Of a stretch of DNA of 64,000 nt, positions 34,896-58,718 are shown piece by piece (position 1 is the stretch's first letter; each line of letters opens with the position of its first letter). The DNA lies in the sequence record OP557969.1; one strand, given 5' to 3'. Under the pieces are notes generated by a model. The model was not told the DNA's origin. It saw only the letters and a program-made list of their open reading frames with translations, and did not search any database. A program made the translations under genes and the position numbers.

Positions 34896-35324
34896 ATGAA
34901 TATCGAACAAATCATCCGTAATCATTCTTTCTTCGCCCCAGAGACTGGTCGTGTAATTGAGAATGTCAAAATCGAAGAACTTATGGTGAATGTTAAATAC
35001 AAAGAACCAAATGATGAGATTAGTAGCACTTTTTGTGCACTTCGTGCACCATTCCGCAATGAAAAAGCAAAAAAACCAGCATATGTTCTTGCAATTGCTT
35101 TAGGATGTGTTGTTAAACTTGCAGTTGATGAAAATATTATTAATATCAAAGTCGCCCCTACCAATGACGAAGAAAACATTGATTTGAACTTTGATGGTAA
35201 TCTCGACGAAGATGTATTTTTTCAACAGTCACTTGTTTATGACTTCCGTACCGTGACATATTCACATATTAACTTCGTCAATGAAATGGTTGATATTGTA
35301 GCCAAATATGAAGAATCTCTATAA
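34896..35324 (+). CDS. EExxFQxS-family paralog
   Basis: DEDVFFQQSLVYD. Confidence 0.75.
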   Translation: MNIEQIIRNHSFFAPETGRVIENVKIEELMVNVKYKEPNDEISSTFCALRAPFRNEKAKKPAYVLAIALGCVVKLAVDENIINIKVAPTNDEENIDLNFDGNLDEDVFFQQSLVYDFRTVTYSHINFVNEMVDIVAKYEESL

Positions 35325-35381
35325 TTAAATCATAAAAGCCTCCATGTTGGAGGCTTTTCTCACATAAGGAAATGAAGAAAT

Positions 35382-35933
35382 ATGATTGAACAAATTAATA
35401 TTCTCACACAACAAATTACCGACTTTCTCTCAGATAAAGAAGGTTTCAAAACTGAAGTGAAAATGCACGGCGTTAGTCTTGATGTAATTTCACCAGATGG
35501 AAATGTTACAAATTATGATATGTACGAATTGTTTCTTTACACTTTAGCAGTACGTAAACTAGGAAGTGACATTGAACTAAACATTAACACTGATAGTGAT
35601 GGAAATAAAATTTTTGCAATCAATACAAGTGCTAAGTATGATGTTAGTGCAGAAATTAAAAAAATTAACGATAGCTTTGTTGGTTTCACCCATGATTCAA
35701 TTCAAGGTGTTTTTGTAGGTAAACAAACTTCATCAAGTCAATGTCCATTTTGTATTATGACTTTATATAAAAATGGTGATTGGATGCGACAAGACTTGGT
35801 ATATGCTGAAATGTTGTATGCATTTACACATGGTCTAGAAATTGAATTAGATGATAGTGCTTTTTGCTTTAAGAAAATCCGAAAACTCACAAATGATATT
35901 CAAAAGCAACTTAAAGAATTAAATGATAAATAA
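35382..35933 (+). CDS. Hypothetical protein
   Basis: ORF track; follows the terminator at 35335-35360. Confidence 0.7.
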   Translation: MIEQINILTQQITDFLSDKEGFKTEVKMHGVSLDVISPDGNVTNYDMYELFLYTLAVRKLGSDIELNINTDSDGNKIFAINTSAKYDVSAEIKKINDSFVGFTHDSIQGVFVGKQTSSSQCPFCIMTLYKNGDWMRQDLVYAEMLYAFTHGLEIELDDSAFCFKKIRKLTNDIQKQLKELNDK

Positions 35934-36090
35934 ATGTACCAGAAGTGGTTAACATATCATGTTATTTTCCTCCCTTACATAATAATGATGCGTTATTAGA
36001 TTTTCATTTTATTATTTCTTTTTTGTACAAAATCATATTAGTACTGCCCCGTATATCGGGGCATTTTATTATCTAAAATATGGTGATTTT

Positions 36091-36482
36091 ATGAAAAACA
36101 TTGGCTCTTCTATACAAAAAGACCTTTCATTTTACCTTAATAAATTCAGAAGTATAAATGGTAATAAATTTAATAGTATCTATCAGTTCACACATAAAGA
36201 ATATATTACTATTGATCCCTTTTCAAAAAACTGATGTATGTTAATGATAATAATTATAGTGTTAAATTATCATTCGATATTGTGTTGGATAAATTAACAT
36301 TTACGGAATACACTACCAATAAAACTTCATTTTTACACAAGTATAATAGAAAGGTATATAATCATATTTCTAGTTATTTAAATGAAGAATATTACTTTCA
36401 ACAATCTACAATAGAAAAAGTATTATTCAGTACTGAAGAATTAAAAGAATTATATTATTGGTATGAGAAATTTACATCTTGA
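36091..36482 (+). pseudogene. EExxFQxS-family paralog split by a -1 frameshift at A-AAA-AAC-TGA (36225-36234)
   Basis: 47-aa ORF from 36091 stops at 36234; the -1 frame (track ORF 36234..36482) carries NEEYYFQQSTIE; the joined product is ~130 aa like its paralogs. Confidence 0.55.
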
Positions 36483-36537
36483 CATTATGGTGGTTTCATC
36501 TTACAATACAAGATAATGATGCGTTGAGGACAAATTC

Positions 36538-36948
36538 ATGAGTATAGATTTACACAATGAACTACAATATTTTTTTGATTTGGATATATCACGTTTGAAC
36601 AGACATGTCAATCATATATCCAGAACTATATGGTGGTCTGATGAGGCTGATGAACCAAGGATTCAGATTTGTGATAATTTGTCAGTTTTAAGATTGTATG
36701 TTCTTGATACCGAAATGAATATTATGATAACATACGTACCACCCACAAACAAACTTCTAATCAACACACTAAACCCAGATACAGTACTGAAAATTTTTGA
36801 TTTGGATACGATACAGTCAAGCGAAACACTATTCCAACGTTCATTGGTTGATGATCTAGGGGGTATTTCTTTTGACGATATATTAAAATTGAAGAAGATG
36901 TATAATGAATTATTAGAGATTAAAAATACCGTTCTAATGGGGATTTAA
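36538..36948 (+). CDS. EExxFQxS-family paralog
   Basis: SSETLFQRSLVDD. Confidence 0.75.
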   Translation: MSIDLHNELQYFFDLDISRLNRHVNHISRTIWWSDEADEPRIQICDNLSVLRLYVLDTEMNIMITYVPPTNKLLINTLNPDTVLKIFDLDTIQSSETLFQRSLVDDLGGISFDDILKLKKMYNELLEIKNTVLMGI

Positions 36949-36949
36949 T

Positions 36950-37354
36950 ATGGTAAGTTTATTAGATATTGATAATACTAGTCTGGTTCTGGTGAAAAAA
37001 GGATTAATTCCAAATTCTAACAAGATTGATTATGCTGTTATTGAAACAAATATTGGGAATATCTGGTACGACTCTGAAAGAGACATTGTGTTTAGCTGTG
37101 TAGATAGTGATCGTTCTGAGTGCTGTAGGGTTGGGCATGACGGACAATTTATTTTCGAATTTCGTTTCTGGAAAGATTCCAGATTTCACCAGGAGCATGT
37201 TTCAATTACAAATGTAAATTGTAATGAAGAATCATTCTTCATGGAAAGTACTATTAATGATTTTGGCTCAGTTACTTTTGAGTACTATAAAAAAGTATAT
37301 AACTTGTACAGAGAAGTAATTCGAATCATAAGAACCTCTGAGGGTCAAGATTAA
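36950..37354 (+). CDS. EExxFQxS-family paralog
   Basis: NEESFFMESTIND. Confidence 0.75.
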   Translation: MVSLLDIDNTSLVLVKKGLIPNSNKIDYAVIETNIGNIWYDSERDIVFSCVDSDRSECCRVGHDGQFIFEFRFWKDSRFHQEHVSITNVNCNEESFFMESTINDFGSVTFEYYKKVYNLYREVIRIIRTSEGQD

Positions 37355-37355
37355 T

Positions 37356-37733
37356 ATGACTACTACCATATATAATATTTTAGGTAACTTGAATAAAAAC
37401 ATAGATAATGATTTTGTTATAGTTGAAAACACTAAAAATATAATTCATCTACCATTGGGTACACCAGATAGGTTAATTTTTAACATATACGCTAACACAC
37501 TGACATACATACACGATGGTATGGTTATCGTTGTGCTTGATATTAAAGAAAATACAATACGATATGCATATGACTTTAACGTTTATTGGTCAAGAACTCA
37601 TAGTATTGATATTGAGGAAGATGAACTTTTTCAATTATCGTTAATTGAGAAAAATGTAATAGGAGTTACCGAGATTGGTATTGTTAAAAAAGCTTTGGAA
37701 TATGCAAATAAAAAAATAAATGGCGAACTATGA
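37356..37733 (+). CDS. EExxFQxS-family paralog
   Basis: EEDELFQLSLIE. Confidence 0.75.
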   Translation: MTTTIYNILGNLNKNIDNDFVIVENTKNIIHLPLGTPDRLIFNIYANTLTYIHDGMVIVVLDIKENTIRYAYDFNVYWSRTHSIDIEEDELFQLSLIEKNVIGVTEIGIVKKALEYANKKINGEL

Positions 37734-38194
37734 TGAACATTGAGGAAATAAAAAATCATTTTGAAATTGCATTGTCTTGTGATTTTGATAGTTGTTATGT
37801 TACTGAACCAGAAGATATAATTAGAATTTCCACATCGTTTTCAGAAGAATACAATATACTCATTGAGAAATCATATGACAGAACCGAACTCTCATTTTAC
37901 AATAAGGATTTACGAACAACATCATTTATATTATTATATAACACAACATCGGATATAATAGAGATTATAACAAGTAAAACAGGTAAAACAAGTAAAGATG
38001 TACATTATGAGACTATACCAAATGTAAGTTATTGTTCAACAGAAGAAGGATACTTCCAGGAATCACTTATTAAAAATTTATCAGTTAGCTATTCTGATTT
38101 AAGCATTATAGTCAATTATGTGGAAAAGTTAAATGATTTCGTTCTATCGATGTTTGATATCACTGAGCAAAAACCAAAGGAAATCAAATGTTAA
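37730..38194 (+). CDS. EExxFQxS-family paralog
   Basis: TEEGYFQESLIK. Confidence 0.75.
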   Translation: MMNIEEIKNHFEIALSCDFDSCYVTEPEDIIRISTSFSEEYNILIEKSYDRTELSFYNKDLRTTSFILLYNTTSDIIEIITSKTGKTSKDVHYETIPNVSYCSTEEGYFQESLIKNLSVSYSDLSIIVNYVEKLNDFVLSMFDITEQKPKEIKC

Positions 38195-38643
38195 ATCCTG
38201 GACATTTTTTTCATTTACTGGACATTACACCTATACCCGATTTGATCAGCGAGACTAATCATTATCGTGATATTGGAATTGTATCAATGGAATATGATTC
38301 ACCTGACTTTAAATGTTACGTAACATACGATCAGGTGGCTTATGAGTCAGAGCCTGAGATTAAAAAACCATCATATATTTTTGTGTTCATATATAATGAT
38401 TATAGTGGTGATGTACTGAATGATGTTCATATTGACACATTTGAAATATGTGGTAATATTATATCAGATGATTCAGCATCCACATTTGATTTGGAATTAA
38501 ACAGTACTGAAGAGTCACTTTTTCAGTTGAGTACTATATGTGATACTATATTAACTCTAGATGACATTGAGAAATTTAAAGAACAGCTTGACGCAGTTCG
38601 TGAGATGTTCTATAATCATTATCCAGAAGTAGAGTTCAATTAA
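38188..38643 (+). CDS. EExxFQxS-family paralog
   Basis: TEESLFQLSTICD. Confidence 0.75.
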   Translation: MLNPGHFFHLLDITPIPDLISETNHYRDIGIVSMEYDSPDFKCYVTYDQVAYESEPEIKKPSYIFVFIYNDYSGDVLNDVHIDTFEICGNIISDDSASTFDLELNSTEESLFQLSTICDTILTLDDIEKFKEQLDAVREMFYNHYPEVEFN

Positions 38644-38657
38644 CTAAAGGTAATAAA

Positions 38658-38918
38658 ATGACAAAAGTAGTTCGTAAACGCCACATGATGAATATGGATG
38701 AATTTCGTACATTTGACAAATATCGTACTATGTTTCGTATGCTGTCACAGGGTCGCCCAATCGTCATTGTAACAGAGAATTACATGTCACCTGAGATTAT
38801 GTTTGGTAATTACGAAAAGGTCTTCATGTTGTACGTGAAGCGTGGATTGCTTACAATCAAGACATTAGCTGAAGCAACTGATGATGATATGGATGGAGAT
38901 AATACCTTTACCATGTGA
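38658..38918 (+). CDS. Hypothetical protein
   Basis: ORF track; AAGG RBS. Confidence 0.7.
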   Translation: MTKVVRKRHMMNMDEFRTFDKYRTMFRMLSQGRPIVIVTENYMSPEIMFGNYEKVFMLYVKRGLLTIKTLAEATDDDMDGDNTFTM

Positions 38919-38926
38919 GGAAATAT

Positions 38927-39004
38927 ATGTCTGAAAAACCAAAAGAACCTTTAGATCGTGATGATGATTTTTATGACGAACGATATGGAGATGATAATGA
39001 GTAA
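38927..39004 (+). CDS. 25-aa acidic microprotein
   Basis: GAGG RBS; MSEKPKEPLDRDDDFYDERYGDDNE. Confidence 0.5.
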   Translation: MSEKPKEPLDRDDDFYDERYGDDNE

Positions 39005-39248
39005 AAATAGTGCGGTGCTTAAAAAGATTTTAAAGGAAATTGATGGTGAATTTAATGTCACAGAAGAAGAATATCAGCATTGGAAGAAAGATTTCGAACA
39101 ACTAACCGAGTATGATAAAGTGTTCAATATGATTGGCGTAATTAGCCAGTACTTACTTGGTGGAGGACGTGCAAGTGCTTCAATTCTGGCATCTGCAATC
39201 ATCTGCACATCACGATGGTGTGATGAAAAAAGTTTGGAAGATTTCTAA
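38997..39248 (+). CDS. Hypothetical protein
   Basis: Track ORF 38958..39248; GGAG RBS favours ATG 38997. Confidence 0.65.
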   Translation: MSKNSAVLKKILKEIDGEFNVTEEEYQHWKKDFEQLTEYDKVFNMIGVISQYLLGGGRASASILASAIICTSRWCDEKSLEDF

Positions 39249-39300
39249 ATAAGATGCTATAATATATCAGAGTACCTTAACAATATAAAAAGGATTTTAT

Positions 39301-41181
39301 ATGAAACCTATCCGAGTACTATCTCTTTTTAATGGAATGAGTGTAGGATACATGGCATTAAAAGATGCTGGTATCCCTGTTGAAAAATATTATTCATCCG
39401 AAATTGACAAATTTGCTATAGCTGAATCCCAAGCTAACTTCCCCGATATAATCCAATTGGGTGATGTAACTAAGTGGAGAGAATGGGATATTGAATGGGA
39501 CAAGATAGATCTACTGATGGGTGGTTTTCCATGCTTCCCAGCAGGAACTATGATAATGACAAATAAAGGTCATAAAGATATAAAAGATATAAAAATTGGT
39601 GATATGGTTCTTACACACACTGGACAGTACCAAAAAGTATTGAGTACTGGTGTTAAAAAGGCTCCCACTCGTATTATTACGGGTCAAGGTCACCTTCCAA
39701 TTGAATGTACCGATAATCATCCATTTTGGAGTAGGGAACGTCTAGCCAATAAATGGAATAATCAACGCCGAAGATATGATTCTGTGTTTTCTGAACCGCA
39801 ATGGGTAAATGCTATAGATCTTACTAAACAAAGTTATATTTGTAATGTTAAAAATATTACACATAATACTGTAAGTGATAAAGATGAAAAATATTGGTAT
39901 TTTGTTGGTCGTTTTATGGGTGATGGATGTGCTAGTGTATCTAATAACAAATACAGTATTACTATTGTAGATTCATTAGATAAAGTTGATGAATTGAAAA
40001 AATGCTTTGATGATTTTGGATACAAATACACATTAGCTATTAAAGATAATCATGTAAGATGTGATATATATAGCAAAAAGCTTTATGATGAATTAATATG
40101 TATTGGGCATAAATCACAAAACAAATGTTTACCACCTGAAATATTCAATGAAACTATCAATAACAAAGAAGCATTTATTAAAGGATACATGGATGCAGAT
40201 GGTTGTGAGGATAAACACAATAAAAAATACAAATTTACCACCACAAGTTATAAAATAGTTCTTGGTATGCAACAGTTAATCTTAGATACTTATCAAAGTC
40301 ATTGTACTATTAGCCAAACTGTTCCAAAAACAAAAAAATATATAAAAAATAAGTTGGTTAATCAGCTTCCGTATTGGAATGTTCATTTTAGCTATAATAA
40401 AATTAAAAGAGATGATGTAATATATGATGAAATTTATATATGGAATCGTGGTGTAAAAAGTAATGTACCAACCGGAGAATGGAAAACCGTTTACAATATT
40501 GAAGTTGCAGTAGATAACACATATACAGCGAACAATATTGTAGTTCATAACTGCCAAGCGTGGTCAGTTGCAGGTAAACAGGGTGGAATAAATGATCCTC
40601 GTGGTATGTTATTCCATACAATGGTTGATATTTACCAGCACATAAAAAGTCTCAATCCAGACTTGAAAGTACTGTTCGAGAATGTTAAAATGAAAGAAGA
40701 TTTCAAGCAATACATTAATAGTGTTCTTGAGATGACACCAGTACTGATAAATTCCCAGCATTATACGCCTCACTTCAGGCAGCGATATTACTGGTACAGT
40801 ACTGATAAACTTTTTATACCACCTGCATTATCCAATGCACCTAAACTTCAAGATATTATTGAAGATGGTTGGTACACTGACAGAACCGCTTCGTACTGTA
40901 TAGATGCTAACTATTTTAAGGGTGGTGATTGTAACCAGTACTTTAATAAATCAAGAAGACAAATTGTTTTCAAAGAACCTGATATCGATAGGGATTTCCT
41001 TCTTGAACATGGTAAGCGAAATGTGGACTATCGTCATTTAACAGTACAAGAGTGTTGCATGTTGCAAGGAATTGATGTAAACTACTTCAAAGTTAGTAGT
41101 TCAACACAAGCATACAAAATGCTTGGGAATGGATGGACTATGCCAGTTATATCACACTTACTACGAGATATATTCTTTTGA
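39301..41181 (+). CDS. DNA (cytosine-5) methyltransferase containing an intein
   Basis: Motif I SLFNG, motif IV GGFP/C split by the intein, VI FENVK, VIII RQRYYW, IX RHLTVQEC, X LGNGW; 286-aa extein. Confidence 0.93.
   Translation: MKPIRVLSLFNGMSVGYMALKDAGIPVEKYYSSEIDKFAIAESQANFPDIIQLGDVTKWREWDIEWDKIDLLMGGFPCFPAGTMIMTNKGHKDIKDIKIGDMVLTHTGQYQKVLSTGVKKAPTRIITGQGHLPIECTDNHPFWSRERLANKWNNQRRRYDSVFSEPQWVNAIDLTKQSYICNVKNITHNTVSDKDEKYWYFVGRFMGDGCASVSNNKYSITIVDSLDKVDELKKCFDDFGYKYTLAIKDNHVRCDIYSKKLYDELICIGHKSQNKCLPPEIFNETINNKEAFIKGYMDADGCEDKHNKKYKFTTTSYKIVLGMQQLILDTYQSHCTISQTVPKTKKYIKNKLVNQLPYWNVHFSYNKIKRDDVIYDEIYIWNRGVKSNVPTGEWKTVYNIEVAVDNTYTANNIVVHNCQAWSVAGKQGGINDPRGMLFHTMVDIYQHIKSLNPDLKVLFENVKMKEDFKQYINSVLEMTPVLINSQHYTPHFRQRYYWYSTDKLFIPPALSNAPKLQDIIEDGWYTDRTASYCIDANYFKGGDCNQYFNKSRRQIVFKEPDIDRDFLLEHGKRNVDYRHLTVQECCMLQGIDVNYFKVSSSTQAYKMLGNGWTMPVISHLLRDIFF
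39532..40551 (+). mobile_element. 340-aa intein with LAGLIDADG homing endonuclease
   Basis: Block A CFPAGT, block B CTDNH, LAGLIDADG boxes VGRFMGDG and IKGYMDADG, block F VYNIEV, terminal VHN followed by Cys. Confidence 0.93.
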
Positions 41182-41663
41182 ACATGAACAACTACCCCAC
41201 TTATACAGAACGTGCAATGGAATTTAAACGTCAGTTAGCCAAGGATGAATTAGAATTTAATTTGTATTATCCTAATATTGGTGATGAGGTATTGTATAGT
41301 TCTCATGCTAAGAATGGAACTTTACTTCATTCCGGTAAAGGTATTGTTGTGGATATGATTAGTACGTTTAAAGGAAAACTTAATGTAATGTACAAAGTAC
41401 AAGATTCAAGTACTAAGTGTATTCATGAAGTGATGCATAATATACCTACATACCCAAAAGATTTTGTTGAGCTAATATCTCGAAGGGAGAAACCTATGTT
41501 CTATTGTGGTTACGACAAATTAACCAAACAAATTATTCCTAATACTATGGGAAAATTTAAAAGTGATGTAAAATCTGAACTTAATAAGAAATTAGGTTCT
41601 TCATGGGAAACTGAAAACGAGTTTATCGAAATTCGTTTAATTGAAGTTACTATTCTTGATTAA
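41133..41663 (+). CDS. Hypothetical protein (likely start 41184)
   Basis: ORF track. Confidence 0.65.
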   Translation: MDYASYITLTTRYILLNMNNYPTYTERAMEFKRQLAKDELEFNLYYPNIGDEVLYSSHAKNGTLLHSGKGIVVDMISTFKGKLNVMYKVQDSSTKCIHEVMHNIPTYPKDFVELISRREKPMFYCGYDKLTKQIIPNTMGKFKSDVKSELNKKLGSSWETENEFIEIRLIEVTILD

Positions 41664-42222
41664 TTATAAATCCACGCATTGCGTGGATTTTTTCATAGGT
41701 GCATATATGACAGTTCCGTATGTTAAAATTATTAACAATATCCTTGATTTATGGGAAGATGTTATTACCGGTAAAAAGAATCCAATACCAGTACACGTAC
41801 TAACTGGAAGACTACAATTCAGAATGTCTAACAAAACTGAAACGTTTAATAATCATGATATTTGTATTACATTAAAAACACCTGTTAGTATTGTAATTAA
41901 AAAAAATAAAGATGATGAATTGTCATTATCTATTGGTCGTGATAAAATTATTTTAAGTAATTTGTCTGAAGAAGAATTCTTTCAAAGAAGTACTATCATC
42001 GACATGAAAGATTTCACATATGAATCATTAGTAGAACTCAATACACGTTTTGATGATATTCAGGAACGATTGCGACCAATACTCCGTAGAGAAGAAGAAG
42101 CCTGGATTGAAAGTATGAAGAAGATGCAAGAAATGTTAAAAGAAAATATTAACAATCTTGGTAAAACAACAATGGAAATTGGTAAAACTTTAAAACTCAA
42201 CTTTTCAAAGGATCGTAAATGA
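41641..42222 (+). CDS. EExxFQxS-family paralog (likely start ~41707)
   Basis: SEEEFFQRSTIID. Confidence 0.75.
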   Translation: MKLLFLINYKSTHCVDFFIGAYMTVPYVKIINNILDLWEDVITGKKNPIPVHVLTGRLQFRMSNKTETFNNHDICITLKTPVSIVIKKNKDDELSLSIGRDKIILSNLSEEEFFQRSTIIDMKDFTYESLVELNTRFDDIQERLRPILRREEEAWIESMKKMQEMLKENINNLGKTTMEIGKTLKLNFSKDRK

Positions 42223-42671
42223 AAATCGATGAACTGATTTATATTTTAGGTAACTTGCACAAAATATTGTTACATCGCAACGAGATGAATAAACTAGGGT
42301 ATAATATAACTAATTTAAATGAAACATCATTTAAATATAACTCAATCACTGGTGGAAATTATAATATTGTGTATTGTCATGAAACTGACCCTGACTGCTA
42401 TCAACTTACGTTATACTTTTATCCAACAAACCCTACCATTGTTCAAGACATATCATCAATATCACTTGACCCAGATGGTGAAATGAGTATAGAATATAGC
42501 TATGATTCTAAAAAAGAATGTTACGTTGAAGATATGAAAAATATGTTTAACGATGCATATGTGTTCCAGCTAAGTACTGTACATGATGTTGGAAGTACTA
42601 ATGGGCAATTTTGGAATACATGCTATTATCATATGATTGGAATTTGTAAATTACTAAAAGGCGATGATTAA
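42219..42671 (+). CDS. EExxFQxS-family paralog
   Basis: NDAYVFQLSTVHD. Confidence 0.7.
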   Translation: MKIDELIYILGNLHKILLHRNEMNKLGYNITNLNETSFKYNSITGGNYNIVYCHETDPDCYQLTLYFYPTNPTIVQDISSISLDPDGEMSIEYSYDSKKECYVEDMKNMFNDAYVFQLSTVHDVGSTNGQFWNTCYYHMIGICKLLKGDD

Positions 42672-43054
42672 TGAAATACAGCATTGAAGTACATTACACT
42701 ACTGGTGATACTGAAAATCAATATAACATAGTTAAGACCATTGATGTTCAATGGGATACTAAAGAGGAAGCAGTTGCTGCTTTACAGTGTCTAAAAGAGC
42801 ATTGGGTGTTTTATATGAAGCAAGATAATTGCCATACAAAAGAACGCGAAACTATCGTTAAAAATGCTAAACAAAAAGAGTGGTTTGACCCAATTTCACC
42901 AGAATATTCATTTTTGGTTAAAGTTGGTGGCGTGACAGTACCCTTACGAACACCGTGGAACGGCTACTTTGAAACTCTTCATAATGCACGAGTTGTCGCT
43001 GTTGACAATCCTGAACAAATCGATTTTGATTCATTGGACTGGAAAAAATTATGA
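42671..43054 (+). CDS. Hypothetical protein
   Basis: ORF track. Confidence 0.7.
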   Translation: MKYSIEVHYTTGDTENQYNIVKTIDVQWDTKEEAVAALQCLKEHWVFYMKQDNCHTKERETIVKNAKQKEWFDPISPEYSFLVKVGGVTVPLRTPWNGYFETLHNARVVAVDNPEQIDFDSLDWKKL

Positions 43055-43494
43055 CAGTACTGCACCAATTGAAGAAGGTTAAGCATCCAGTTGTATATGA
43101 GGACTGGAAACGTCAGAAGCTGATGGGTGACTTTTATTACCCAAAATCTAAAGTTCTTGCGAATTCAAGATGTACATATATCAAACATAACGATAAAGAT
43201 ACAGTATTTGTTGAAATGGGGTTCAATCCATCAAATACAATGTTCAGTACTAACCAAACATTTTACAAATTTCATATCCAAAAAGATGTATTTTCTATTA
43301 AAATTATAAAACATTTAGTTGAAGATCTGGTATACAGTGAAGAAAGAGTTCCTTTATCATTAGTGGATATTCCTTATAATAATTTAGAGGAAATGTACTT
43401 CCAACAGTTGACAGTACAAGAAAACTTTGGTATGATAGGACTTCAAGAGTTAGAGATGATTAAGCAAATTCGTGATATCTACTTTAAGGGGTAA
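43051..43494 (+). CDS. EExxFQxS-family paralog
   Basis: LEEMYFQQLTVQE. Confidence 0.7.
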   Translation: MTVLHQLKKVKHPVVYEDWKRQKLMGDFYYPKSKVLANSRCTYIKHNDKDTVFVEMGFNPSNTMFSTNQTFYKFHIQKDVFSIKIIKHLVEDLVYSEERVPLSLVDIPYNNLEEMYFQQLTVQENFGMIGLQELEMIKQIRDIYFKG

Positions 43495-43496
43495 CT

Positions 43497-43963: not shown

Positions 43964-43992
43964 TTGACACATGAAAATGGAGTATGTATAAT
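43964..43992 (+). promoter_or_regulatory. Consensus sigma70 promoter
   Basis: TTGACA-N17-TATAAT. Confidence 0.85.
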
Positions 43993-44009
43993 ACTCCAAT
44001 ATTAATCAA

Positions 44010-47770: not shown

Positions 47771-48163
47771 ATGACTGAATCAGAACTACATGAAATGATA
47801 GATTTCATTTATGAAATGATACAAGATAAAAATATCATTAATACAATTACTTCTGGTCCAAGACAAATTGGTAATCAAATGACATATTCTTTATCTTTAT
47901 GGATAAACCAGAACTACAAAGTTGATTGTTTGTATTTCCGTCCTGATATTGATGCTTATTATTTTGTCAATCATGATGCATTAATGAAACCACATAAGCG
48001 TCCAGTTGATGATAACTTTGTGACACACCCATTTTACCTTGCTGAATCAGAGGAAGATGAGTTTCAAAAGAACACAACGTTAAGCCCAGGTGAAATTTGC
48101 ATCCCTTACACACTAAAAGATAAAATGATTTACATCACAGAAGTTATGAAAACATGCTGGTAA
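47771..48163 (+). CDS. EExxFQxS-family paralog
   Basis: SEEDEFQKNTTL. Confidence 0.7.
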   Translation: MTESELHEMIDFIYEMIQDKNIINTITSGPRQIGNQMTYSLSLWINQNYKVDCLYFRPDIDAYYFVNHDALMKPHKRPVDDNFVTHPFYLAESEEDEFQKNTTLSPGEICIPYTLKDKMIYITEVMKTCW

Positions 48164-48780: not shown

Positions 48781-49270
48781 CATGCCGATTCGTGGTGTAC
48801 CAGACCCAATACGTGAAATTCTTAAGCACATTCGCATTGAAACACTAGAAGTTAACATGCGTCGTTATAATATATATTACTTTAAAACTTCCGAAATGAG
48901 TTCTGTACAGATTGTCATTGGTACATCTATTAAGATTACTCGTGTACTTGATGGCAGTACTGACTTTGTTGAATACAACGTACTTACTAATAAAGTAACA
49001 CATACATATAAATGGAGTGGATATAAAACTATTAAATATGAGTTTGACTTAGCTAGAACCGAAGAAGAACGATTCATGTTGAGTACTATAAATCCAGAAA
49101 ACTATCCTGACATTGATACATTTTTGCTAATTTTAAAATTGTATAATAAAGCAAATGAGAAAGCTAAAGAGTACAATAGAATCATGTATGAACGCAAAAA
49201 AGAACGTGTACAAAAAAGTTATGATCTGTATGATAACCCATACGTGAAATATAGTAAGGGAAAGAAATGA
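48767..49270 (+). CDS. EExxFQxS-family paralog (likely start 48782)
   Basis: TEEERFMLSTIN. Confidence 0.7.
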   Translation: MRNTNMPIRGVPDPIREILKHIRIETLEVNMRRYNIYYFKTSEMSSVQIVIGTSIKITRVLDGSTDFVEYNVLTNKVTHTYKWSGYKTIKYEFDLARTEEERFMLSTINPENYPDIDTFLLILKLYNKANEKAKEYNRIMYERKKERVQKSYDLYDNPYVKYSKGKK

Positions 49271-49671
49271 ATAATGAAGTTCAAATTATCATTACTCCAC
49301 CTATACAAAGTCTGGATGTAACCATTAGCGATTTTTTGGAAAAATACTATGAATGGTTTAATGAAGATTCAGTCATTTATAACCATTCATTAACGGATGG
49401 TTTTGTTGAGCTTATTGAATTAAATTCCAAATCGCTATATTTCTGTGTCGAATACAATGATTATATGACCGATGAAGCATATCGCTTTCGTTGTACATTA
49501 TATCCTAACCATTTTTCTATTGGTTATAAAGACTATCAGTACTGTACCACTAACTATAGTGAAGAGGAAGAATTTCAGTACAATTTACTTTATCCAGATT
49601 TGGATTATACTATCGCAGTACTGTTGTCTAAAATCATGGATTTTTATAAAGGTAAATGTAATGCAACCTAA
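49267..49671 (+). CDS. EExxFQxS-family paralog
   Basis: SEEEEFQYNLLY. Confidence 0.7.
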   Translation: MNNEVQIIITPPIQSLDVTISDFLEKYYEWFNEDSVIYNHSLTDGFVELIELNSKSLYFCVEYNDYMTDEAYRFRCTLYPNHFSIGYKDYQYCTTNYSEEEEFQYNLLYPDLDYTIAVLLSKIMDFYKGKCNAT

Positions 49672-50025: not shown

Positions 50026-50070
50026 TACTGATATATATGCTATTGTTTTGTTTTAAACAGGAGAACAATA

Positions 50071-50574
50071 ATGCTCATTACGCATGTACCGGAAAGTATT
50101 ACTGAGATTTTAAGTAAAATTAATGTTAATGAATTTGAACGAACAGTTCGAAAACAAGGTACTTATCACTATAAGCACAAAGATGGTGAACATCAAATAA
50201 GCTTAGATCAGAATTATCAAACTCTAACAATTAAAATGGTTACTCGCTGGAATTTTATTCGTAAAGATACTATTATCTGTGATTTTGGTAAAAGACTACT
50301 TAGAAAATGTTTCTCTGAAACAAATGGTATCTATCCAAACCCGAATAGAATTTTCACATATAAATACATCACAGATGAAGATGTACATTTTCAAGAGAGT
50401 TTGGTATGTGATAATAAGTACTTTCCCGCATTTTCAGATAATTTGAAGTTAAAAGAACTATATAACTATTTCTTAAACGACAATATTCAGTGGGATGAAG
50501 AATTAAAACAACGACAGATAGAACGTGAAAAGAAAAAAGTCTGGACTGGTTCACATTGGATGCAACGTAAATGA
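50071..50574 (+). CDS. EExxFQxS-family paralog
   Basis: DEDVHFQESLVCD. Confidence 0.75.
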   Translation: MLITHVPESITEILSKINVNEFERTVRKQGTYHYKHKDGEHQISLDQNYQTLTIKMVTRWNFIRKDTIICDFGKRLLRKCFSETNGIYPNPNRIFTYKYITDEDVHFQESLVCDNKYFPAFSDNLKLKELYNYFLNDNIQWDEELKQRQIEREKKKVWTGSHWMQRK

Positions 50575-50741: not shown

Positions 50742-50751
50742 AAGATATATT

Positions 50752-51044
<293 letters not shown>

Positions 51045-51051
51045 TTTTTCA

Positions 51052-51079
51052 TTGACAACCTCAGTATATTTGCTATAAT
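51052..51079 (+). promoter_or_regulatory. Sigma70 promoter
   Basis: TTGACA-N16-TATAAT, with TG upstream of the -10. Confidence 0.75.
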
Positions 51080-51087
51080 CACTTCAG

Positions 51088-51315
51088 ATGAATAAATCCA
51101 CGAGGTATCCAAAAATGACCAAAGCAGAACTTGTTGCATTATTGGAATCATACCCTGATGATGCATGTATTGAAGTTGTACATACTGCACGACATTTTGA
51201 CATTGAAGATGTAGTACGTTATAATGATAAAGGTGTACCAATAATGGAACTGTGTATTGGTGAAGTGAAAACTGTACCTGAATCGGAAAAACGTAAAAAA
51301 ATTAATCAGGAGTAA
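51088..51315 (+). CDS. Hypothetical protein (start possibly 51115)
   Basis: ORF track; MTKAELVALLESYPDD. Confidence 0.65.
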   Translation: MNKSTRYPKMTKAELVALLESYPDDACIEVVHTARHFDIEDVVRYNDKGVPIMELCIGEVKTVPESEKRKKINQE

Positions 51316-51319
51316 TATT

Positions 51320-51592
51320 ATGCATTTTGAAAAATTCAACACAAGTCGTGACACACGCATTGATGCTCTTTATGAAACCCAAGACTCAATTAGTATTCGT
51401 ACATGTAGTGGTGATGTATATCATGACTGTACTATTGGTTGGGAACAGGGAAGAACACGTAGTGCAGAATTCGATAACTATCGCTTCTACCAAGGGGACA
51501 CCACAATCTGGCCTGAAGACGTAGAAGATATTGCAATTGAAGATGAACATAAAGATGAATTTATCAAATTTAATCCCGAAACCGAATCATAA
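51320..51592 (+). CDS. Hypothetical protein
   Basis: ORF track; AGGAG RBS; N-terminus MHFEKFNTS resembles that of 48211 (MNFIKFNTS). Confidence 0.7.
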   Translation: MHFEKFNTSRDTRIDALYETQDSISIRTCSGDVYHDCTIGWEQGRTRSAEFDNYRFYQGDTTIWPEDVEDIAIEDEHKDEFIKFNPETES

Positions 51593-51606
51593 ATAACGGG
51601 ACAACA

Positions 51607-51722
<116 letters not shown>

Positions 51723-51729
51723 CAAAAGA

Positions 51730-51803
51730 CGGGGTATAGCACAATTGGATAGTGCAAGAGAATTCTAATCTCTAGGTTGGGGGTTCAAGTCCCTCTACCT
51801 CGG
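51730..51803 (+). tRNA. tRNA-Arg(TCT), CCA not encoded
   Basis: CGGGGTA/TACCTCG, AGAGA-ATTCTAA-TCTCT, GGTTCAAGT. Confidence 0.88.
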
Positions 51804-51827
51804 CCTACTTTAATTAAAGGTTAAACC

Positions 51828-51992
51828 ATGACGCATGAAGAATGGATGAATGACATTAATTTTAGATATGCAGGTATCGGTAACTGGAGAAAGTATCATT
51901 GGGAAATCATATCAGACCCAGCAGAATACGATAAACTTATGAATCATGAAGTGTATCCGTGGTTCTTTATTGAAATAATGGTACGATTATGA
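51828..51992 (+). CDS. MTHxEW-family microprotein (54 aa), tandem copy 1
   Basis: MTHEEWMNDINFRYAGIGNWRKYHWEIISDPAEYDKLMNHEVYPWFFIEIMVRL. Confidence 0.7.
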   Translation: MTHEEWMNDINFRYAGIGNWRKYHWEIISDPAEYDKLMNHEVYPWFFIEIMVRL

Positions 51993-52149
51993 CACATGAA
52001 GAATGGATGAATGACATTAATTTTAGATATTCGGGTATCGGTAAATGGCTAAAGTATCATTGGGAATTCATTTCAGAGCCACATCTGTATGATAAACTTA
52101 TCAACGATTCTGCATATAAAATGTACTTAATTGAACTACTGGTACGAAT

Positions 52150-52153
<4 letters not shown>
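51989..52153 (+). CDS. MTHxEW-family microprotein (54 aa), tandem copy 2
   Basis: MTHEEWMNDINFRYSGIGKWLKYHWEFISEPHLYDKLINDSAYKMYLIELLVRI. Confidence 0.7.
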
Positions 52154-52322
<169 letters not shown>

Positions 52323-52325
52323 AAG

Positions 52326-52770
<445 letters not shown>

Positions 52771-52798
52771 GTATCTTAATAACAGAAGGTATATTGAA

Positions 52799-53038
52799 AT
52801 GAGTAAGTATTTTGTGAGTTATAGTTATAATGTATCACGAAAGATTCCACGTGGTGACGGAATGGGATGGTCTTATGATGCATATACTTTAAATGAGTCA
52901 TGTATCATCGAATTAAAAGAAAAAGACCTTGACATTTTAAAAATCAAACAATATATTCTTGATGTTGAATTGGCACATCGTACTGATATCTATCCAGATG
53001 TAAATAACATCAGCATCTTAGTACTAACCAAAGTATAA
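52799..53038 (+). CDS. Hypothetical protein
   Basis: Track ORF 52769..53038; GAAGG RBS before ATG 52799. Confidence 0.65.
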   Translation: MSKYFVSYSYNVSRKIPRGDGMGWSYDAYTLNESCIIELKEKDLDILKIKQYILDVELAHRTDIYPDVNNISILVLTKV

Positions 53039-53044
53039 GATAAA

Positions 53045-53078
<34 letters not shown>

Positions 53079-53084
53079 GAATTC

Positions 53085-53425
53085 CACAATCAGACGTATA
53101 TGGTGTAAGTTACGTCGATGCAATCCAGAACAAGATCTCTGGTACTCTAGGAAGTGGTTAATGTTAACCTAGACGGGTTTGATAATTGGACGATAGGCAA
53201 TTATTACTTGACTAGCAGGTTTAAACTAGAGGTGACTATCCTTCACCAAACTGGAAAACCGGATGGACTTTTATTTAAAAGGGTAAGGCGTGGAAATATG
53301 TTTACAGTAGTTGCTTTTAGTAGCCTGTACGCCCCACGTCAAGGTAGCCGAAAGGCAAGTTAAAACGGGTGGTTATAAAGCTGAATTAACAGCGGCGTTT
53401 AAAAGCGTCACCATCCATTTTTTTT
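53085..53425 (+). ncRNA. Candidate ~340-nt structured ncRNA
   Basis: Own promoter, at least ten helices, GAAA tetraloop, possible kissing loops, terminal three-way junction and U tract, no RBS-backed ORF. Confidence 0.65.
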
Positions 53426-53441
53426 AATTAAAGTTGGTGAT

Positions 53442-54080
<639 letters not shown>

Positions 54081-54153
54081 CTTTTTAATTTAAAAGTACT
54101 TTACTGTAGTGTTTAGTACCGTATAATGTAAACAAAAGGATAAAATAAAACTC

Positions 54154-54678
<525 letters not shown>

Positions 54679-54700
54679 TTAAAAAATCAGTACTTTATTA

Positions 54701-54914
<214 letters not shown>

Positions 54915-54917
54915 TCA

Positions 54918-55085
<168 letters not shown>

Positions 55086-55106
55086 TTCACATGATATAGG
55101 GTACAC

Positions 55107-55364
<258 letters not shown>

Positions 55365-55380
55365 ATAAAAAGAACGAAAA

Positions 55381-55645
<265 letters not shown>

Positions 55646-55653
55646 AATTGACG

Positions 55654-55704
<51 letters not shown>

Positions 55705-55721
55705 TACAACCGACAATGACT

Positions 55722-55788
<67 letters not shown>

Positions 55789-55963
55789 GAAGAAACTGCT
55801 AAACAGCTTGAAGAACTTTGTAGTGCTGCACCGATGCCGACTCTTGGCTTAATCAAGTTGATGCGTCGAAATAAGAAAAATTTAAAATAATACAGTAAGA
55901 TGGCCTCCCCTCCATATCATGAGAGTATAGAGACTTGTTGGTTATCTTACTTTTAAACAAACT

Positions 55964-56037
55964 GCCTCAATAGCAAAATTGGTAATGCACACGTTTTGTA
56001 AGCGTGAGATTTTTCCGTTCGAGTCGGAATTGGGGCA
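55964..56037 (+). tRNA. tRNA-Thr(TGT), CCA not encoded
   Basis: GCCTCAA/TTGGGGC, CACGT-TTTGTAA-GCGTG, TTCCG-TTCGAGT-CGGAA. Confidence 0.88.
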
Positions 56038-56054
56038 CAAAATAAAGGCACACT

Positions 56055-56471
56055 ATGACATACAATATTGTTAAAATGGTGAACTATGTATTAAAAAACA
56101 ACTCATGGTCACTGCATGATGTACAATTAGAAGATATTGGTGAAGTTAGAGTATTTTGCTATGATGAAGAATTGAATGAAACCACTGATTTGAATAAATG
56201 TTTTAATATTTTTCTTGGTTATGAAATCAATGATCATTTTTATTCATTTGATGTGTATTTTGAAAAAGTTAAAATCAGAATTTCTAATGTAAATAGTGAT
56301 TATTTTGACACTAGAATTGAATTGAATTTTGACGATATTGATACTGAAGAAAAATTCTTTCAGTACTGCCTCGTAAACGACCTAAATGGCTTGACATTTG
56401 AGGACATTAGTGCTATACTTAAAGTTCAAAGATTGATTCCAGAAGAGGTTTCAAATCCGTTTAATGACTAG
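56055..56471 (+). CDS. EExxFQxS-family paralog
   Basis: TEEKFFQYCLVND. Confidence 0.75.
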   Translation: MTYNIVKMVNYVLKNNSWSLHDVQLEDIGEVRVFCYDEELNETTDLNKCFNIFLGYEINDHFYSFDVYFEKVKIRISNVNSDYFDTRIELNFDDIDTEEKFFQYCLVNDLNGLTFEDISAILKVQRLIPEEVSNPFND

Positions 56472-56829
56472 TTTAATAACTCGTATAATGCAAGATGTTC
56501 ATAGGAATCTTTATACTGGTAATTTTGATGATCCTAACATAAAAATATTATGTTATGATGGGTTCACACTAGTACACCCATTAGAATCTAATAATATATA
56601 CATAGCATATAATTCACCTAATCTTTTGTATCAATTTGATTTATATAGTACATTAGCGAAAGTAATCTTAGATGTTTCTAAGGAGCCATTTTTTATTGCA
56701 GTACGTGATTTTGAGTACACAGAAGAATCATTATTCCAGTACTCGATGATAAATGATATTGGTGACTTGACATTAGAAGAAATAAATGCAATAGTTGGTG
56801 TGTGTCGTTTGATTAATACCCACAATTAG
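56464..56829 (+). CDS. EExxFQxS-family paralog
   Basis: TEESLFQYSMIND; close paralog of 56055. Confidence 0.75.
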   Translation: MTSLITRIMQDVHRNLYTGNFDDPNIKILCYDGFTLVHPLESNNIYIAYNSPNLLYQFDLYSTLAKVILDVSKEPFFIAVRDFEYTEESLFQYSMINDIGDLTLEEINAIVGVCRLINTHN

Positions 56830-56838
56830 GAGATTCAT

Positions 56839-57030
56839 ATGTTCTGGAATTTATTATGCTTGTTTGGTCGTACATTAGTTCTTGCAATTATTCATACACC
56901 TGGCATTCGTAATTATGTTTCTTATGAATTTAAGAAAAATTATCACAACAATACTGAAGATCGTGCAACTAAGATGTGCAAAGACTTCAATGTAGATGTT
57001 CCACCATTCAAGAAGTACGAGGATGAATAA
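56839..57030 (+). CDS. Hypothetical protein
   Basis: ORF track; AGGAG RBS. Confidence 0.65.
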   Translation: MFWNLLCLFGRTLVLAIIHTPGIRNYVSYEFKKNYHNNTEDRATKMCKDFNVDVPPFKKYEDE

Positions 57031-57314
57031 TGGAATTTATTGTTGCACCTGATGAACTAAAAACATTCACGTTCCGAGACAATAACAATTATCCTTATAC
57101 AAATCATTCATTGAATTCATTACATGTTATTTCAATCATTGCATCTGAATACAGAGACAATCCATGTATTGATTTTAAAACCACTGATGGTGAATATACA
57201 TGGGTGATCCCAAAAGATAAATATAGTTATCAAGGGGCAGTAGAAATTCGCGACTCGATTCTACAGCAAATTGAAGATGGACATACTCATCCTAAACTAA
57301 ACATTCAGTACTGA
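57030..57314 (+). CDS. Hypothetical protein
   Basis: ORF track; GAGG RBS. Confidence 0.7.
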   Translation: MEFIVAPDELKTFTFRDNNNYPYTNHSLNSLHVISIIASEYRDNPCIDFKTTDGEYTWVIPKDKYSYQGAVEIRDSILQQIEDGHTHPKLNIQY

Positions 57315-57464
57315 AATCGCTTATCAGAATAACTTCTAATAATAATTATTTTTCTCTACTATCTAACAGTATTTTACAAGAATTCTGTATTTTTGAAGTT
57401 GATTTTTGAACTTCTTATATGTTATACTTACGGCTGATTCAATTATGAATCAGCCTTTTTTCTT

Positions 57465-57896
57465 ATGAGGATTAATATAATGAATAGAGAAGTTATTAGT
57501 TTAATGGATGAGTATATAAACCAAACGCATCGTTTGATATTTTTAAATGAATTCGAGTCCAGAACAACGTATTATTCTGGAGAATATGAGATAACGACTG
57601 GTTCATTTCTGAACGGATATATGGAGTTTTTTGAACAAAGCGATAATGTTTTTATTTCCATATCTGAAAAACATGGTGATGGTTGTGTTATTGATGTATG
57701 GCCCAATAAAGTAGAGATTGATACTTCACACAAAATTGTAATTGATGTAGACGAATCATTATATGATTTAACTGAAGATATGTATATGCAGCTAAATTTT
57801 GTATATGACCTAACTAATATAAGTTATTGTAATTTAAGTAAATTATTTTATATTTGTGGCGTATTACATAATAATACACAACAAAATAAAGGATAA
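57465..57896 (+). CDS. EExxFQxS-family paralog (likely start 57480)
   Basis: TEDMYMQLNFVYD. Confidence 0.65.
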   Translation: MRINIMNREVISLMDEYINQTHRLIFLNEFESRTTYYSGEYEITTGSFLNGYMEFFEQSDNVFISISEKHGDGCVIDVWPNKVEIDTSHKIVIDVDESLYDLTEDMYMQLNFVYDLTNISYCNLSKLFYICGVLHNNTQQNKG

Positions 57897-57904
57897 ACAT
57901 TTAA

Positions 57905-58309
57905 ATGTTGAAAATTCCACAACAGGCATTATCTATACTAATTGAAAATGGTGTAATATTTTCTGAAGGATGTAGTTCATTCTATACATGTGATGTGGAC
58001 CAGTACACATTTGAATACCGTTCATTTAAAAATACATTGAGTGTTTCATGTGAAGCTTCTGACAACATTGTACTTGTCGTTTCTTTCTATGGTGTACCAA
58101 AATTCTTCATTGATATATATTATGATTCTTTTAAGATACAAACATACGACCATTTTCTTGGTGAAGTGCTCTTGCAAATGCCAATTGAACATGTTACTAT
58201 AAATGAAGATATGTTCTTTCAGCTATCTACTGTATATGATATGTGTGGTTTGACATTTGACAACATTAATGGTATTTTTGAAATTGCCAGAACCCTACGA
58301 GGAAGATGA
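57905..58309 (+). CDS. EExxFQxS-family paralog
   Basis: NEDMFFQLSTVYD. Confidence 0.75.
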   Translation: MLKIPQQALSILIENGVIFSEGCSSFYTCDVDQYTFEYRSFKNTLSVSCEASDNIVLVVSFYGVPKFFIDIYYDSFKIQTYDHFLGEVLLQMPIEHVTINEDMFFQLSTVYDMCGLTFDNINGIFEIARTLRGR

Positions 58310-58718
58310 TATGGTCAAAATTTTAAGTGACAATACAGTTGATATTGTTATTGATGTACTTGAAAACAGTAATACATTTGAGAAGAAACACAGTACTGTA
58401 TACTTCGGTAAAGATTGTTGGCTGAACTATACATCTGATAGTTCATTTATAATTCATGTTGAAAAGGGTGATATTGGATTAACGATACATGCTTCCTATA
58501 ATAAAACAATCACTGTTATTGCCAACAAGCCAAGTACTTCTGATTTCTGGGATATAATTGATGATTGTGATCATTTCATGTCAACATTCTATAAAACAGA
58601 AGAAGAACATTTCATGGATAGTACTGTTCGAGAATTACAAATTCCATTTAAATTAATGAAAGCGGTAAGGGATTTTATTTCAAAATACAAAAAAACAGGA
58701 GTATGTGATGCAATTTAA
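58257..58718 (+). CDS. EExxFQxS-family paralog (likely start 58311)
   Basis: TEEEHFMDSTVRE. Confidence 0.7.
   Translation: MTTLMVFLKLPEPYEEDDMVKILSDNTVDIVIDVLENSNTFEKKHSTVYFGKDCWLNYTSDSSFIIHVEKGDIGLTIHASYNKTITVIANKPSTSDFWDIIDDCDHFMSTFYKTEEEHFMDSTVRELQIPFKLMKAVRDFISKYKKTGVCDAI

Follow-up and report, generated by a model that had tools for sequence, protein, structure and literature searches.

How does a single phage come to carry, in close succession, twenty-one small genes whose products agree at the C-terminal end and can barely be aligned elsewhere, and what could such a set of proteins be for? The question is raised by a 64,000-nt stretch (hereafter the window) of the genome of Escherichia phage ph0011, an Asteriusvirus (OP557969.1, 348,217 bp); window coordinates are record coordinates minus 248,000. 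A first-pass annotation had described, at positions 34896-58718, a family of 21 paralogs lying in tandem arrays behind σ70 promoters. It had proposed that they are early adaptors, arising by a genomic accordion, in which a shared docking helix binds one common partner while variable domains recognise different host targets. At the DNA level ph0011 is 84-88% identical to 121Q, PBECO4 and about 35 further Escherichia and Salmonella jumbo phages. The analysis reported here establishes, with high confidence, a large lineage-specific orphan family of RaK2-like Enterobacterales jumbo phages that is real and ancient, and it suggests, much more tentatively, a role for its members in interactions with the host.

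The motif and the extent of the family

In the 21 window members the motif reads (T/S)-E-E-x-Φ-F-Q-x-S-(T/L)-(V/I)-x-D and is followed by an amphipathic helix. A loose regular expression matched 20 of them and none of about 220 other open reading frames (ORFs) of at least 50 aa on both strands. With a hidden Markov model (HMM) of the 38-aa C-terminal block, members scored 34-52 bits, and the next-best window ORF 10 bits. When each member was left out in turn, 17 of the 21 were recovered at E<1e-3; members 42219, 43051 and 47771 (named, like the others below, by their first nucleotide) were marginal, and a fourth, 48782 or thereabouts, lay narrowly above the cut-off. An off-frame ORF at 37821-37955, which reached 10-12 bits, was judged a chance match. 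Genome-wide, an iterated 27-position HMM converged on 46 ph0011 members, and the motif held against shuffled controls: none of 3,036 decoys was matched, and nothing on the minus strand.

A logo of 190 family sequences gave, for the N-cap, T 53% and S 20%, followed by E 93%, E 81%, F 98%, Q 85% (M 14%), S 88%, T 57% or L 38%, V 51% or I 33% and D 71%, with F, Y or L before the invariant F. After the D come a short loop, a [T/S]-Φ-[E/D]-[D/E] cap and the helix, whose amphipathic character was borne out by a median hydrophobic moment of 0.37, versus 0.23 for shuffled sequences (p = 4.5e-7). The N-termini are barely alignable, as had been noticed, since only 7 of 1,035 paralog pairs reached E<1e-3 in blastp. 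The genes thus form a true paralog family, with a shared C-terminal motif and helix and N-terminal parts that diverge fast.

All 21 ORFs listed by the first-pass annotation were found, on the + strand of the window, and each is annotated in OP557969.1 as "hypothetical protein". Most of the proposed starts stand, but four of them (41641, 48767, 57465 and 58257) are upstream TTG or ATG codons, and are replaced by the annotated starts 41707, 48782, 57480 and 58311. The member given as 36091/36234 is one family gene, split by a 1-nt deletion. Sizes are 118-171 aa, close to the 120-170 aa that had been indicated, to which a truncated copy of 82 aa has to be added. The count of 21 is correct inside the window and much too small for the genome, where there are 46-59 members; only the window had been visible to the annotator, hence the undercount.

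The upper figure comes from a full-length HMM built from the 190 sequences, which found 59 ph0011 members at E<0.01 (about 10% of the phage genes) with no decoys, and no window member beyond the 21. Most lie in two arrays, at record 30.7-56.3 kb and 282.9-306.7 kb, the latter being that of the window, and small groups are found near record 112, 125, 319 and 324 kb. For Klebsiella phage RaK2 (Alcyoneusvirus) a scan of 150 kb revealed at least 26-32 members, located in two syntenic arrays.

A profile of the 21 paralogs, searched against 1.84 billion representative proteins, retrieved 148 clusters (50% identity) at E<=1e-3, all of 60-193 aa, many of them aligning across profile positions 1-128. 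The motif was present in all 144 clusters checked of the 148. Most clusters are metagenomic, and tandem arrays were seen again, with 10 members in 20 kb of one contig and 5 in another. Divergent representatives matched Erwinia phage Hallingskeid, Salmonella phages Munch, SE_PL, 7t3 and PHA46, and Klebsiella phage fENko-Kae01. Queries with single members retrieved Asteriusvirus orthologs only, a word-indexed protein search Asteriusvirus-like contigs only, and a single-protein search of IMG/VR no relatives.

The superfamily as such is unrecognised in PHROGs, Pfam, NCBIfam, PADLOC or the literature searched. Scans of the 21 members against Pfam, NCBIfam and PADLOC gave no family model and no significant match. 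PHROGs scatters them over more than 20 groups of "unknown function" with few weak cross-hits; those holding orthologs of single members include phrog_17453, 24941, 21500, 24321, 22160 and 23322. Nearly 10% of the RaK2 gene products were reported to be paralogues (PMC3622015), and 22 paralogous ORFs were listed for phage CBB (PMC5259590). The family is not described in a comparative survey of jumbo phages or in recent Asteriusvirus genome papers.

Divergence between orthologs and paralogs

Positional orthologs of 20 of the 21 members were found in 121Q, three of them at 40-54% identity, and one member is absent there. Their median identity was 76.6%, versus 88.5% for 41 neighbouring non-family genes (p = 0.0025). 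The ratio of non-synonymous (dN) to synonymous (dS) substitution rates, ω, estimated between ph0011 and 121Q by the Nei-Gojobori method, ranged from 0.07 to 0.56 across the 20 pairs, with a median of 0.26 versus 0.16 for the neighbours (p = 0.009). Median dN was 0.14 for the family and 0.05 for the neighbours (p = 0.003), and it was higher in the N-terminal part (0.166) than in the C-terminal module (0.092, paired p = 0.0007). Judged by these rates, individual copies are under purifying selection while diverging about three times faster than their surroundings, mostly at the N-terminal side. Further out, RaK2 positional orthologs had a median identity of 30%, versus 47% for neighbouring genes. 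For member 57905, ortholog identity among Asteriusvirus genomes is 100, 91-93, 56 or 28%, and in some genomes another gene has taken its place. As a separate observation, dS between ph0011 and 121Q in window 32000-60000 varied from 0.07 to 1.5, more than 10-fold from gene to gene, which suggests a recombination mosaic.

The closest paralog pair of ph0011 is 47% identical, and only 16 of the 46 members can be aligned with another paralog along 60% or more of their length. The genomic accordion was not supported, as there are no near-identical tandem copies (maximum 47%) and positional orthologs are kept in 121Q and in the RaK2 genus. Changes in copy number by gain or loss of like copies were not seen between these genomes; the changes consist of divergence, replacement, one loss and one frameshift. 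Since paralogs are at most 47% identical and orthologs persist across genera, the expansion is old and stably kept, with arrays that predate the split of the genera.

Predicted fold, transcription and possible function

The structure of member 34896 was predicted with AlphaFold (AF2) from 12 orthologs plus paralogs, with a predicted local distance difference test score (pLDDT) of 93.4 and a predicted template modelling score of 0.87. The model has a helix at residues 3-8, seven strands between 20 and 100, a helix at 105-114 that carries the motif, and a last helix at 122-141. The residues E-D-V-F-F-Q-Q-S-L-V make up the whole of helix 105-114, which is N-capped by D104. Member 57905, about 20% identical to 34896, gave a model of lower confidence (pLDDT 66) with the same order of elements: helix 6-14, six strands between 24 and 94, motif helix 101-110 and helix 118-133. 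In both models the motif helix directly follows the last strand, with the highest local pLDDT (84 and 92-93) and no low-confidence linker, so that the motif would lie inside a single domain rather than on a tethered peptide. The proposed division into a docking helix and separate variable domains is thus not what the models predict, both being one α-β-α-α domain. When the weaker model was compared with BFVD models of RaK2 ORF187 and ORF189 and of further phage proteins, the alignments extended along almost the entire length (template modelling score, TM, 0.42-0.60), which lends the common fold some independent, limited support. We hold with moderate confidence that, as modelled, the members are built as one α-β-α-α domain, whose conserved keel consists of the motif helix plus the last helix. 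In these models a packing role is suggested by the alternation of Q with M, by the invariance of the F and by the small size of the residue at S.

Searches for structural neighbours gave little. Foldseek found no match at E<=0.001 (best E 0.03-0.13 in the PDB and 0.013 in AFDB clusters), a shape search of the ESM Atlas gave TM values up to 0.54, and the best VIA-align Z was 6.8, under the stated noise level of 7-8. Feature searches of the ESM Atlas with two members were uninformative (scores 0.59-0.71), and the family profile hit, among PDB sequences, only Thimet oligopeptidase (E 0.72). Weak matches to p32/gC1qBP/Mam33 did recur, all below the noise level: 7te3 (Z 6.0), 3rpx (Z 5.2), 3qv0 (Z 4.7) and 1yqf (Z 4.0). 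They aligned 105-119 residues, covering residues 1-142 of the model, at a root mean square deviation of 4.7-5.5 Å. No match to MAM33 (PF02330) was found among the 21 members in Pfam at E<=0.1. The likeness, seen in models, is weak and may be one of architecture only.

The family is acidic, with a median isoelectric point (pI) of 4.7 and a median net charge of -9; pI is below 5.5 in 83% of members, versus 54% of ORFs of the same size. Basic or charged C-terminal extensions occur in three window members (41707, 48782 and 50071). No segment resembling a transmembrane one was found in 45 of the 46 members, and the portion of the RaK2 virion mass-spectrometry table (Table S3) with gp182, gp233, gp275 and gp493 holds none of the family ORFs 184-228, 269 and 397-439. 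This acidic, soluble and non-virion character fits host-interaction proteins.

The claim that the co-directional arrays stand behind σ70 promoters was upheld. Scanning window 34000-60000 for TTGACA-N16-18-TATAAT, with at least 11 of 12 positions matching, gave 16 sites on the + strand and none on the - strand. In 200 dinucleotide shuffles 1.3 ± 1.2 sites were expected and no shuffle reached 16, a 12-fold enrichment. Most sites end 31-68 nt upstream of a start codon, including those directly before 36538 (36479..36507, + strand, TTGACA, 17 nt spacer, TACAAT, ending 31 nt upstream), 52386 (52327-52354, + strand, 11/12, ending 32 nt upstream) and 56464 (56391-56419, + strand, 11/12, ending 45 nt upstream). 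Because near-consensus σ70 promoters are so many, transcription is presumably early and by the host RNA polymerase. The related Pseudomonas phage PA5oct depends on the host RNA polymerase (rifampicin-sensitive) and has early genes with TTGAC/TATAATA promoters (PMC7318152). RNA-seq timing is available for PA5oct, but the first 50 kb of its genome (the early-transcribed terminal repeat) contain no family member, and these data can therefore not be used to date expression of the family.

Two adjacencies deserve mention. One metagenomic contig (JGI 3300007747) has, directly downstream of a member, a 74-aa gene (5623-5847) with the Pfam domain Acb2_Tad1_hairpin, a family of anti-CBASS and anti-Thoeris sponges; this is the only anti-defence link found. 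In ph0011 itself an annotated ADP-ribosyltransferase gene lies directly upstream of one family member.

Taken together, these data suggest the following scheme. Each protein would fold into one compact domain, in which an N-terminal helix leads into an antiparallel meander sheet of 6-7 strands, followed by the motif helix and then by an amphipathic helix at the C-terminus. The motif would form an N-capped helix which, with the last helix, makes a helix-loop-helix keel on the sheet, while the surfaces of the sheet and of the N-terminal part would have diverged past sequence recognition. The arrays would be transcribed early by the host RNA polymerase from the σ70 promoters and supply a repertoire of host-interaction proteins, in which every paralog would have its own host component to bind or inhibit, the foremost candidates being defence systems. 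Different host targets for different paralogs would explain both the retention of paralogs across genera and an evolution faster than that of the neighbours. The members may act early as binders in host interaction or counter-defence, and it would be through the diversified surfaces of the sheet and the N-terminal part that they recognise different targets. We infer the timing, the binding and the anti-defence role, and put the probability of this reading at roughly 45%.

Several results weigh against it. Gene-wide ω is always below 1, so that relaxed constraint could replace an arms race as the cause of the speed. No significant match to an anti-defence or defence component was found among the 21 members in Pfam, NCBIfam and PADLOC, nor any known anti-defence gene among the 52 non-family genes of the window, and a search of sequencing runs returned no infection time course for this phage. 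For a shared N-terminal fold the basis is two AlphaFold models, and their input alignments included the other paralogs. Profile comparison (hhalign) between eight subfamilies of the N-terminal part did not outperform reversed controls (p = 0.09), and an HMM restricted to that part moved the scores only weakly and collectively relative to shuffles (p = 4.7e-5), with no significance for individual members. Finally, the strong conservation of E-E and D is not fully accounted for by helix capping; E 93% and E 81% exceed what capping alone needs and leave room for a shared ligand or partner.

This last point leads to the adaptor model, in which the conserved helix docks one common partner and the variable part selects host targets for delivery. 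It draws strength from polar residues that are near-invariant in a hyper-divergent family (E 93%, E 81%, Q 85%, S 88%, D 71%), and from a dN that is lower in the C-terminal module than in the N-terminal part. A speculative candidate for the partner is the phage ClpP/Clp-ATPase protease, as both ph0011 (record 84302-84997 and 170840-173128) and RaK2 encode a ClpP-like protease and a Clp ATPase. However, AlphaFold sets the motif within a single domain with no tether, the Q alternates with M, the F, (T/L) and (V/I) positions are hydrophobic as expected for packing, and (T/S)-E-E suits a helix N-cap, so that we regard the model as unlikely. Its boldest form, a combinatorial counter-defence repertoire on an unseen fold, in which dozens of paralogs would each recognise another immunity or housekeeping protein of the host and hand it, via the invariant helix, to a shared effector such as phage ClpP/Clp-ATPase, is a long shot; if true, the phages would have their own counterpart to the substrate-receptor families (ANK/PRANC or F-box) of poxviruses. 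The proteins could instead serve the phage's own processes, as acidic multi-ligand chaperones of the p32/MAM33 type, as homo- or hetero-oligomeric scaffolds, or as regulators of replication, transcription or assembly. The four MAM33/p32 structures that recur as weak full-model matches (Z 4.0-6.0) would agree with this, as would the stable retention of individual paralogs between genera and the acidity of the family, which is known for p32 too. Yet all these Z values are below the noise level of 7-8, Pfam gives no MAM33 match, and housekeeping partners would not predict three times the dN of neighbours or the replacement of orthologs within a genus; this we consider somewhat less likely still than the adaptor model.

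Two further explanations carry far less weight. The stretch E-E-x-[YF]-F-Q-x-S superficially resembles the potyvirus NIa/TEV cleavage site, E-x-x-Y-x-Q|(S/G), and the loci of T4 internal proteins are likewise hypervariable, so that the motif might be a signal for proteolytic processing or packaging of virion-internal proteins. A TEV-like site was rejected on its spacing, the residue after Q being variable and the S coming one position later, on the prediction of the motif as a packed helix at the highest local confidence, and on the absence of members from that portion of the RaK2 virion table; besides, no 3C-like protease is annotated in the ph0011 genome. We hold this explanation to be very improbable. 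Even less credit goes to the idea that the ORFs are decaying duplicates, in which the motif is a mere remnant of common descent. One member (36097-36482) is indeed frameshifted, one is missing in 121Q, and some orthologs are replaced elsewhere. For the family as a whole, nevertheless, decay is refuted by the purifying selection that the substitution rates indicate: every one of the 20 ortholog pairs has an ω of 0.07-0.56, the reading frames have stayed intact, positional orthologs persist between genera, and the motif is kept in every cluster checked.

Whatever the function, about one in ten genes of a 350-kb phage belongs to one unrecognised family, and the same holds for relatives on Escherichia, Salmonella, Klebsiella and Erwinia. 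Its recognition merges more than 20 "unknown" PHROG groups and about 150 sequence clusters into one object, which comes with a defined motif and a confidently predicted structure and lacks any convincing structural neighbour. Retention across genera, fast evolution and early-type promoters make its members a strong candidate set for host-takeover or anti-defence proteins. Several such phages are in therapy development, so that knowing the function of a tenth of their genes would be practically useful.

The window members, their surroundings and comparison with known systems

All 21 members lie on the + strand. Bit scores given below are those of the iterated genome-wide motif HMM, and leave-one-out E values those obtained with the C-terminal-block HMM. 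Member 34896 (34896..35324, 142 aa), whose AlphaFold model is the high-confidence one, has the motif DEDVFFQQSLVYD (33.1 bits, E 1.6e-8; leave-one-out E 4.4e-8) and RaK2 ORF184 as positional ortholog (45.5% identity). It is followed by the member broken by a -1 frameshift (36097..36482), with the motif NEEYYFQQSTIEK (27.6 bits) in the annotated 82-aa ORF 36234-36482. The break is in an A-run at about 36225-36232, and the 44 N-terminal codons are at 36097-36228, in a different frame. The intact 131-aa 121Q gp83 matched two frames of the window by tblastn, 36097-36228 and 36225-36479, and the nucleotide alignment showed a 1-nt gap. The gap may reflect a true frameshift or pseudogene, or else an error of sequencing in the homopolymer; in 121Q the gene is unbroken.

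A run of six genes with overlapping stop and start codons (36538-38643) begins with member 36538 (36538..36948, 136 aa), with the motif SSETLFQRSLVDD (32.2 bits; leave-one-out E 2.5e-9). Next come 36950..37354 (134 aa, NEESFFMESTIND, 35.3 bits; leave-one-out E 1.9e-10), 37356..37733 (125 aa, EEDELFQLSLIEK, 22.5 bits; leave-one-out E 2.8e-5), 37730..38194 (154 aa, TEEGYFQESLIKN, 29.3 bits), whose 121Q ortholog is only 46% identical, and 38188..38643 (151 aa, TEESLFQLSTICD, 32.2 bits), with a net charge of -24 and a pI of 4.05. Beyond a methyltransferase gene lies the longest member, 41707..42222 (171 aa, record start 289707; SEEEFFQRSTIID, 31.5 bits), with a C-terminal extension of 80 aa rich in lysine and glutamate. 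Member 42219..42671 (150 aa) has a degenerate motif, NDAYVFQLSTVHD (30.9 bits; leave-one-out E only 0.045), and 43051..43494 (147 aa), with LEEMYFQQLTVQE (20.3 bits; leave-one-out E 0.006), has RaK2 ORF198 as positional ortholog (28.6%). The weakest motif, SEEDEFQKNTTLS, belongs to 47771..48163 (130 aa, 22.7 bits; leave-one-out E 0.067), a member that matched the full-length family profile in the representative-protein search (P0027, E 2e-10).

Member 48782..49270 (162 aa, TEEERFMLSTINP, 26.4 bits) has a basic C-terminal tail (pI 9.35), and its N-terminal part is similar by blastp to member 50071..50574 (167 aa, DEDVHFQESLVCD, 27.8 bits), which also has a basic tail and gave no tblastn match in the syntenic region of 121Q. 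Between them is 49267..49671 (134 aa, SEEEEFQYNLLYP, 21.3 bits; leave-one-out E 8.7e-4). Member 52386..52742 (118 aa, TEEEYFQTSTVQE, 31.1 bits) sits among tRNA genes and is followed by 53442..53816 (124 aa, DEADEFQKRTVYE, 26.8 bits; leave-one-out E 7.6e-5), 56055..56471 (138 aa, TEEKFFQYCLVND, 36.0 bits) and 56464..56829 (121 aa, TEESLFQYSMIND, 34.3 bits). The 121Q ortholog of 57480..57896 (138 aa, TEDMYMQLNFVYD, 35.2 bits) is only 40% identical. The motif nearest to the family consensus, NEDMFFQLSTVYD (39.6 bits), is that of 57905..58309 (134 aa), and the last member, 58311..58718 (135 aa, TEEEHFMDSTVRE, 25.9 bits), has RaK2 ORF226 as positional ortholog (36%).

Among the 52 non-family genes of the window, a Pfam scan gave a single match, the NUMOD4/HNH homing endonuclease at 54154-54678. 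It lies in a cluster of eight annotated tRNA genes (51636-56037; Ser, Arg, Ser, Ser, Ile, Asn, Thr and others) interspersed with family members, and it is absent from 121Q together with several small ORFs. Three successive 54-aa ORFs in 51828-52314 (starting at 51828, 51989 and 52150) are 93-96% conserved in 121Q and may be a small tandem family. The DNA cytosine methyltransferase gene at 39301-41181 is 1,881 bp long, versus 861 bp in 121Q; the extra 1 kb or so looks like an intein or Hint-type insertion, flanked by CFPAGT and VVHNC, and tblastn to 121Q covers only 33% of the protein. Outside the window, at record 24757-31255, directly upstream of the first array, lies a second, unrelated tandem family without a Pfam match: 28 ORFs follow one another on the + strand, each encoding some 70 aa, and they share an invariant T together with the motif LG-TNYQE near residue 50.

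How does the motif family compare with systems already known? Proteins of the p32/MAM33 family are strongly acidic and consist of an N-terminal helix, seven antiparallel strands and two C-terminal helices (α-β7-α-α). The modelled phage proteins have this order of elements, the phage family is acidic too, and the alignments with MAM33/p32/gC1qBP structures cover nearly the whole model. Neither sequence nor Pfam searches gave a match, however; no counterpart of the EExxFQxS motif is known there, and Z is only 4.0-6.0, below the noise level. Poxvirus Bcl-2-like and ANK/PRANC families combine a conserved scaffold or docking element with diverged target surfaces in many clustered early paralogs. 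By analogy only, the phage family resembles them in its conserved element, highly diverged parts and many clustered paralogs. PRANC proteins, however, have a separate repeat domain and an F-box-like tail, whereas in the phage family the conserved element is predicted inside a single domain; there is no homology and no ubiquitin-like machinery.

Within phages, the hyperplastic early regions of the T4 type and the internal proteins IPI-III stand for small, fast-evolving genes behind σ70-like early promoters, some of which encode anti-restriction factors, and the family likewise consists of small, fast-evolving, non-essential-looking genes behind σ70-like promoters. T4 internal proteins have an N-terminal capsid-targeting sequence and are packaged. 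The family differs in that its conserved element is C-terminal, and in that the portion of the RaK2 virion table described above contains no member; no conserved N-terminal targeting or cleavage sequence was found, the N-termini being the least conserved part of the members. A parallel in scale is given by lineage-specific expansions in jumbo phages, for example the zinc-ribbon family of Bacillus phage G, with about 35 copies (PMC7824862), and the RaK2 paralogues (PMC3622015), where a family of small proteins has likewise been multiplied tens of times in one genome. Unlike the expansion in phage G, that of ph0011 has another fold and motif, and it is common to several genera, in which positional orthologs can be followed.

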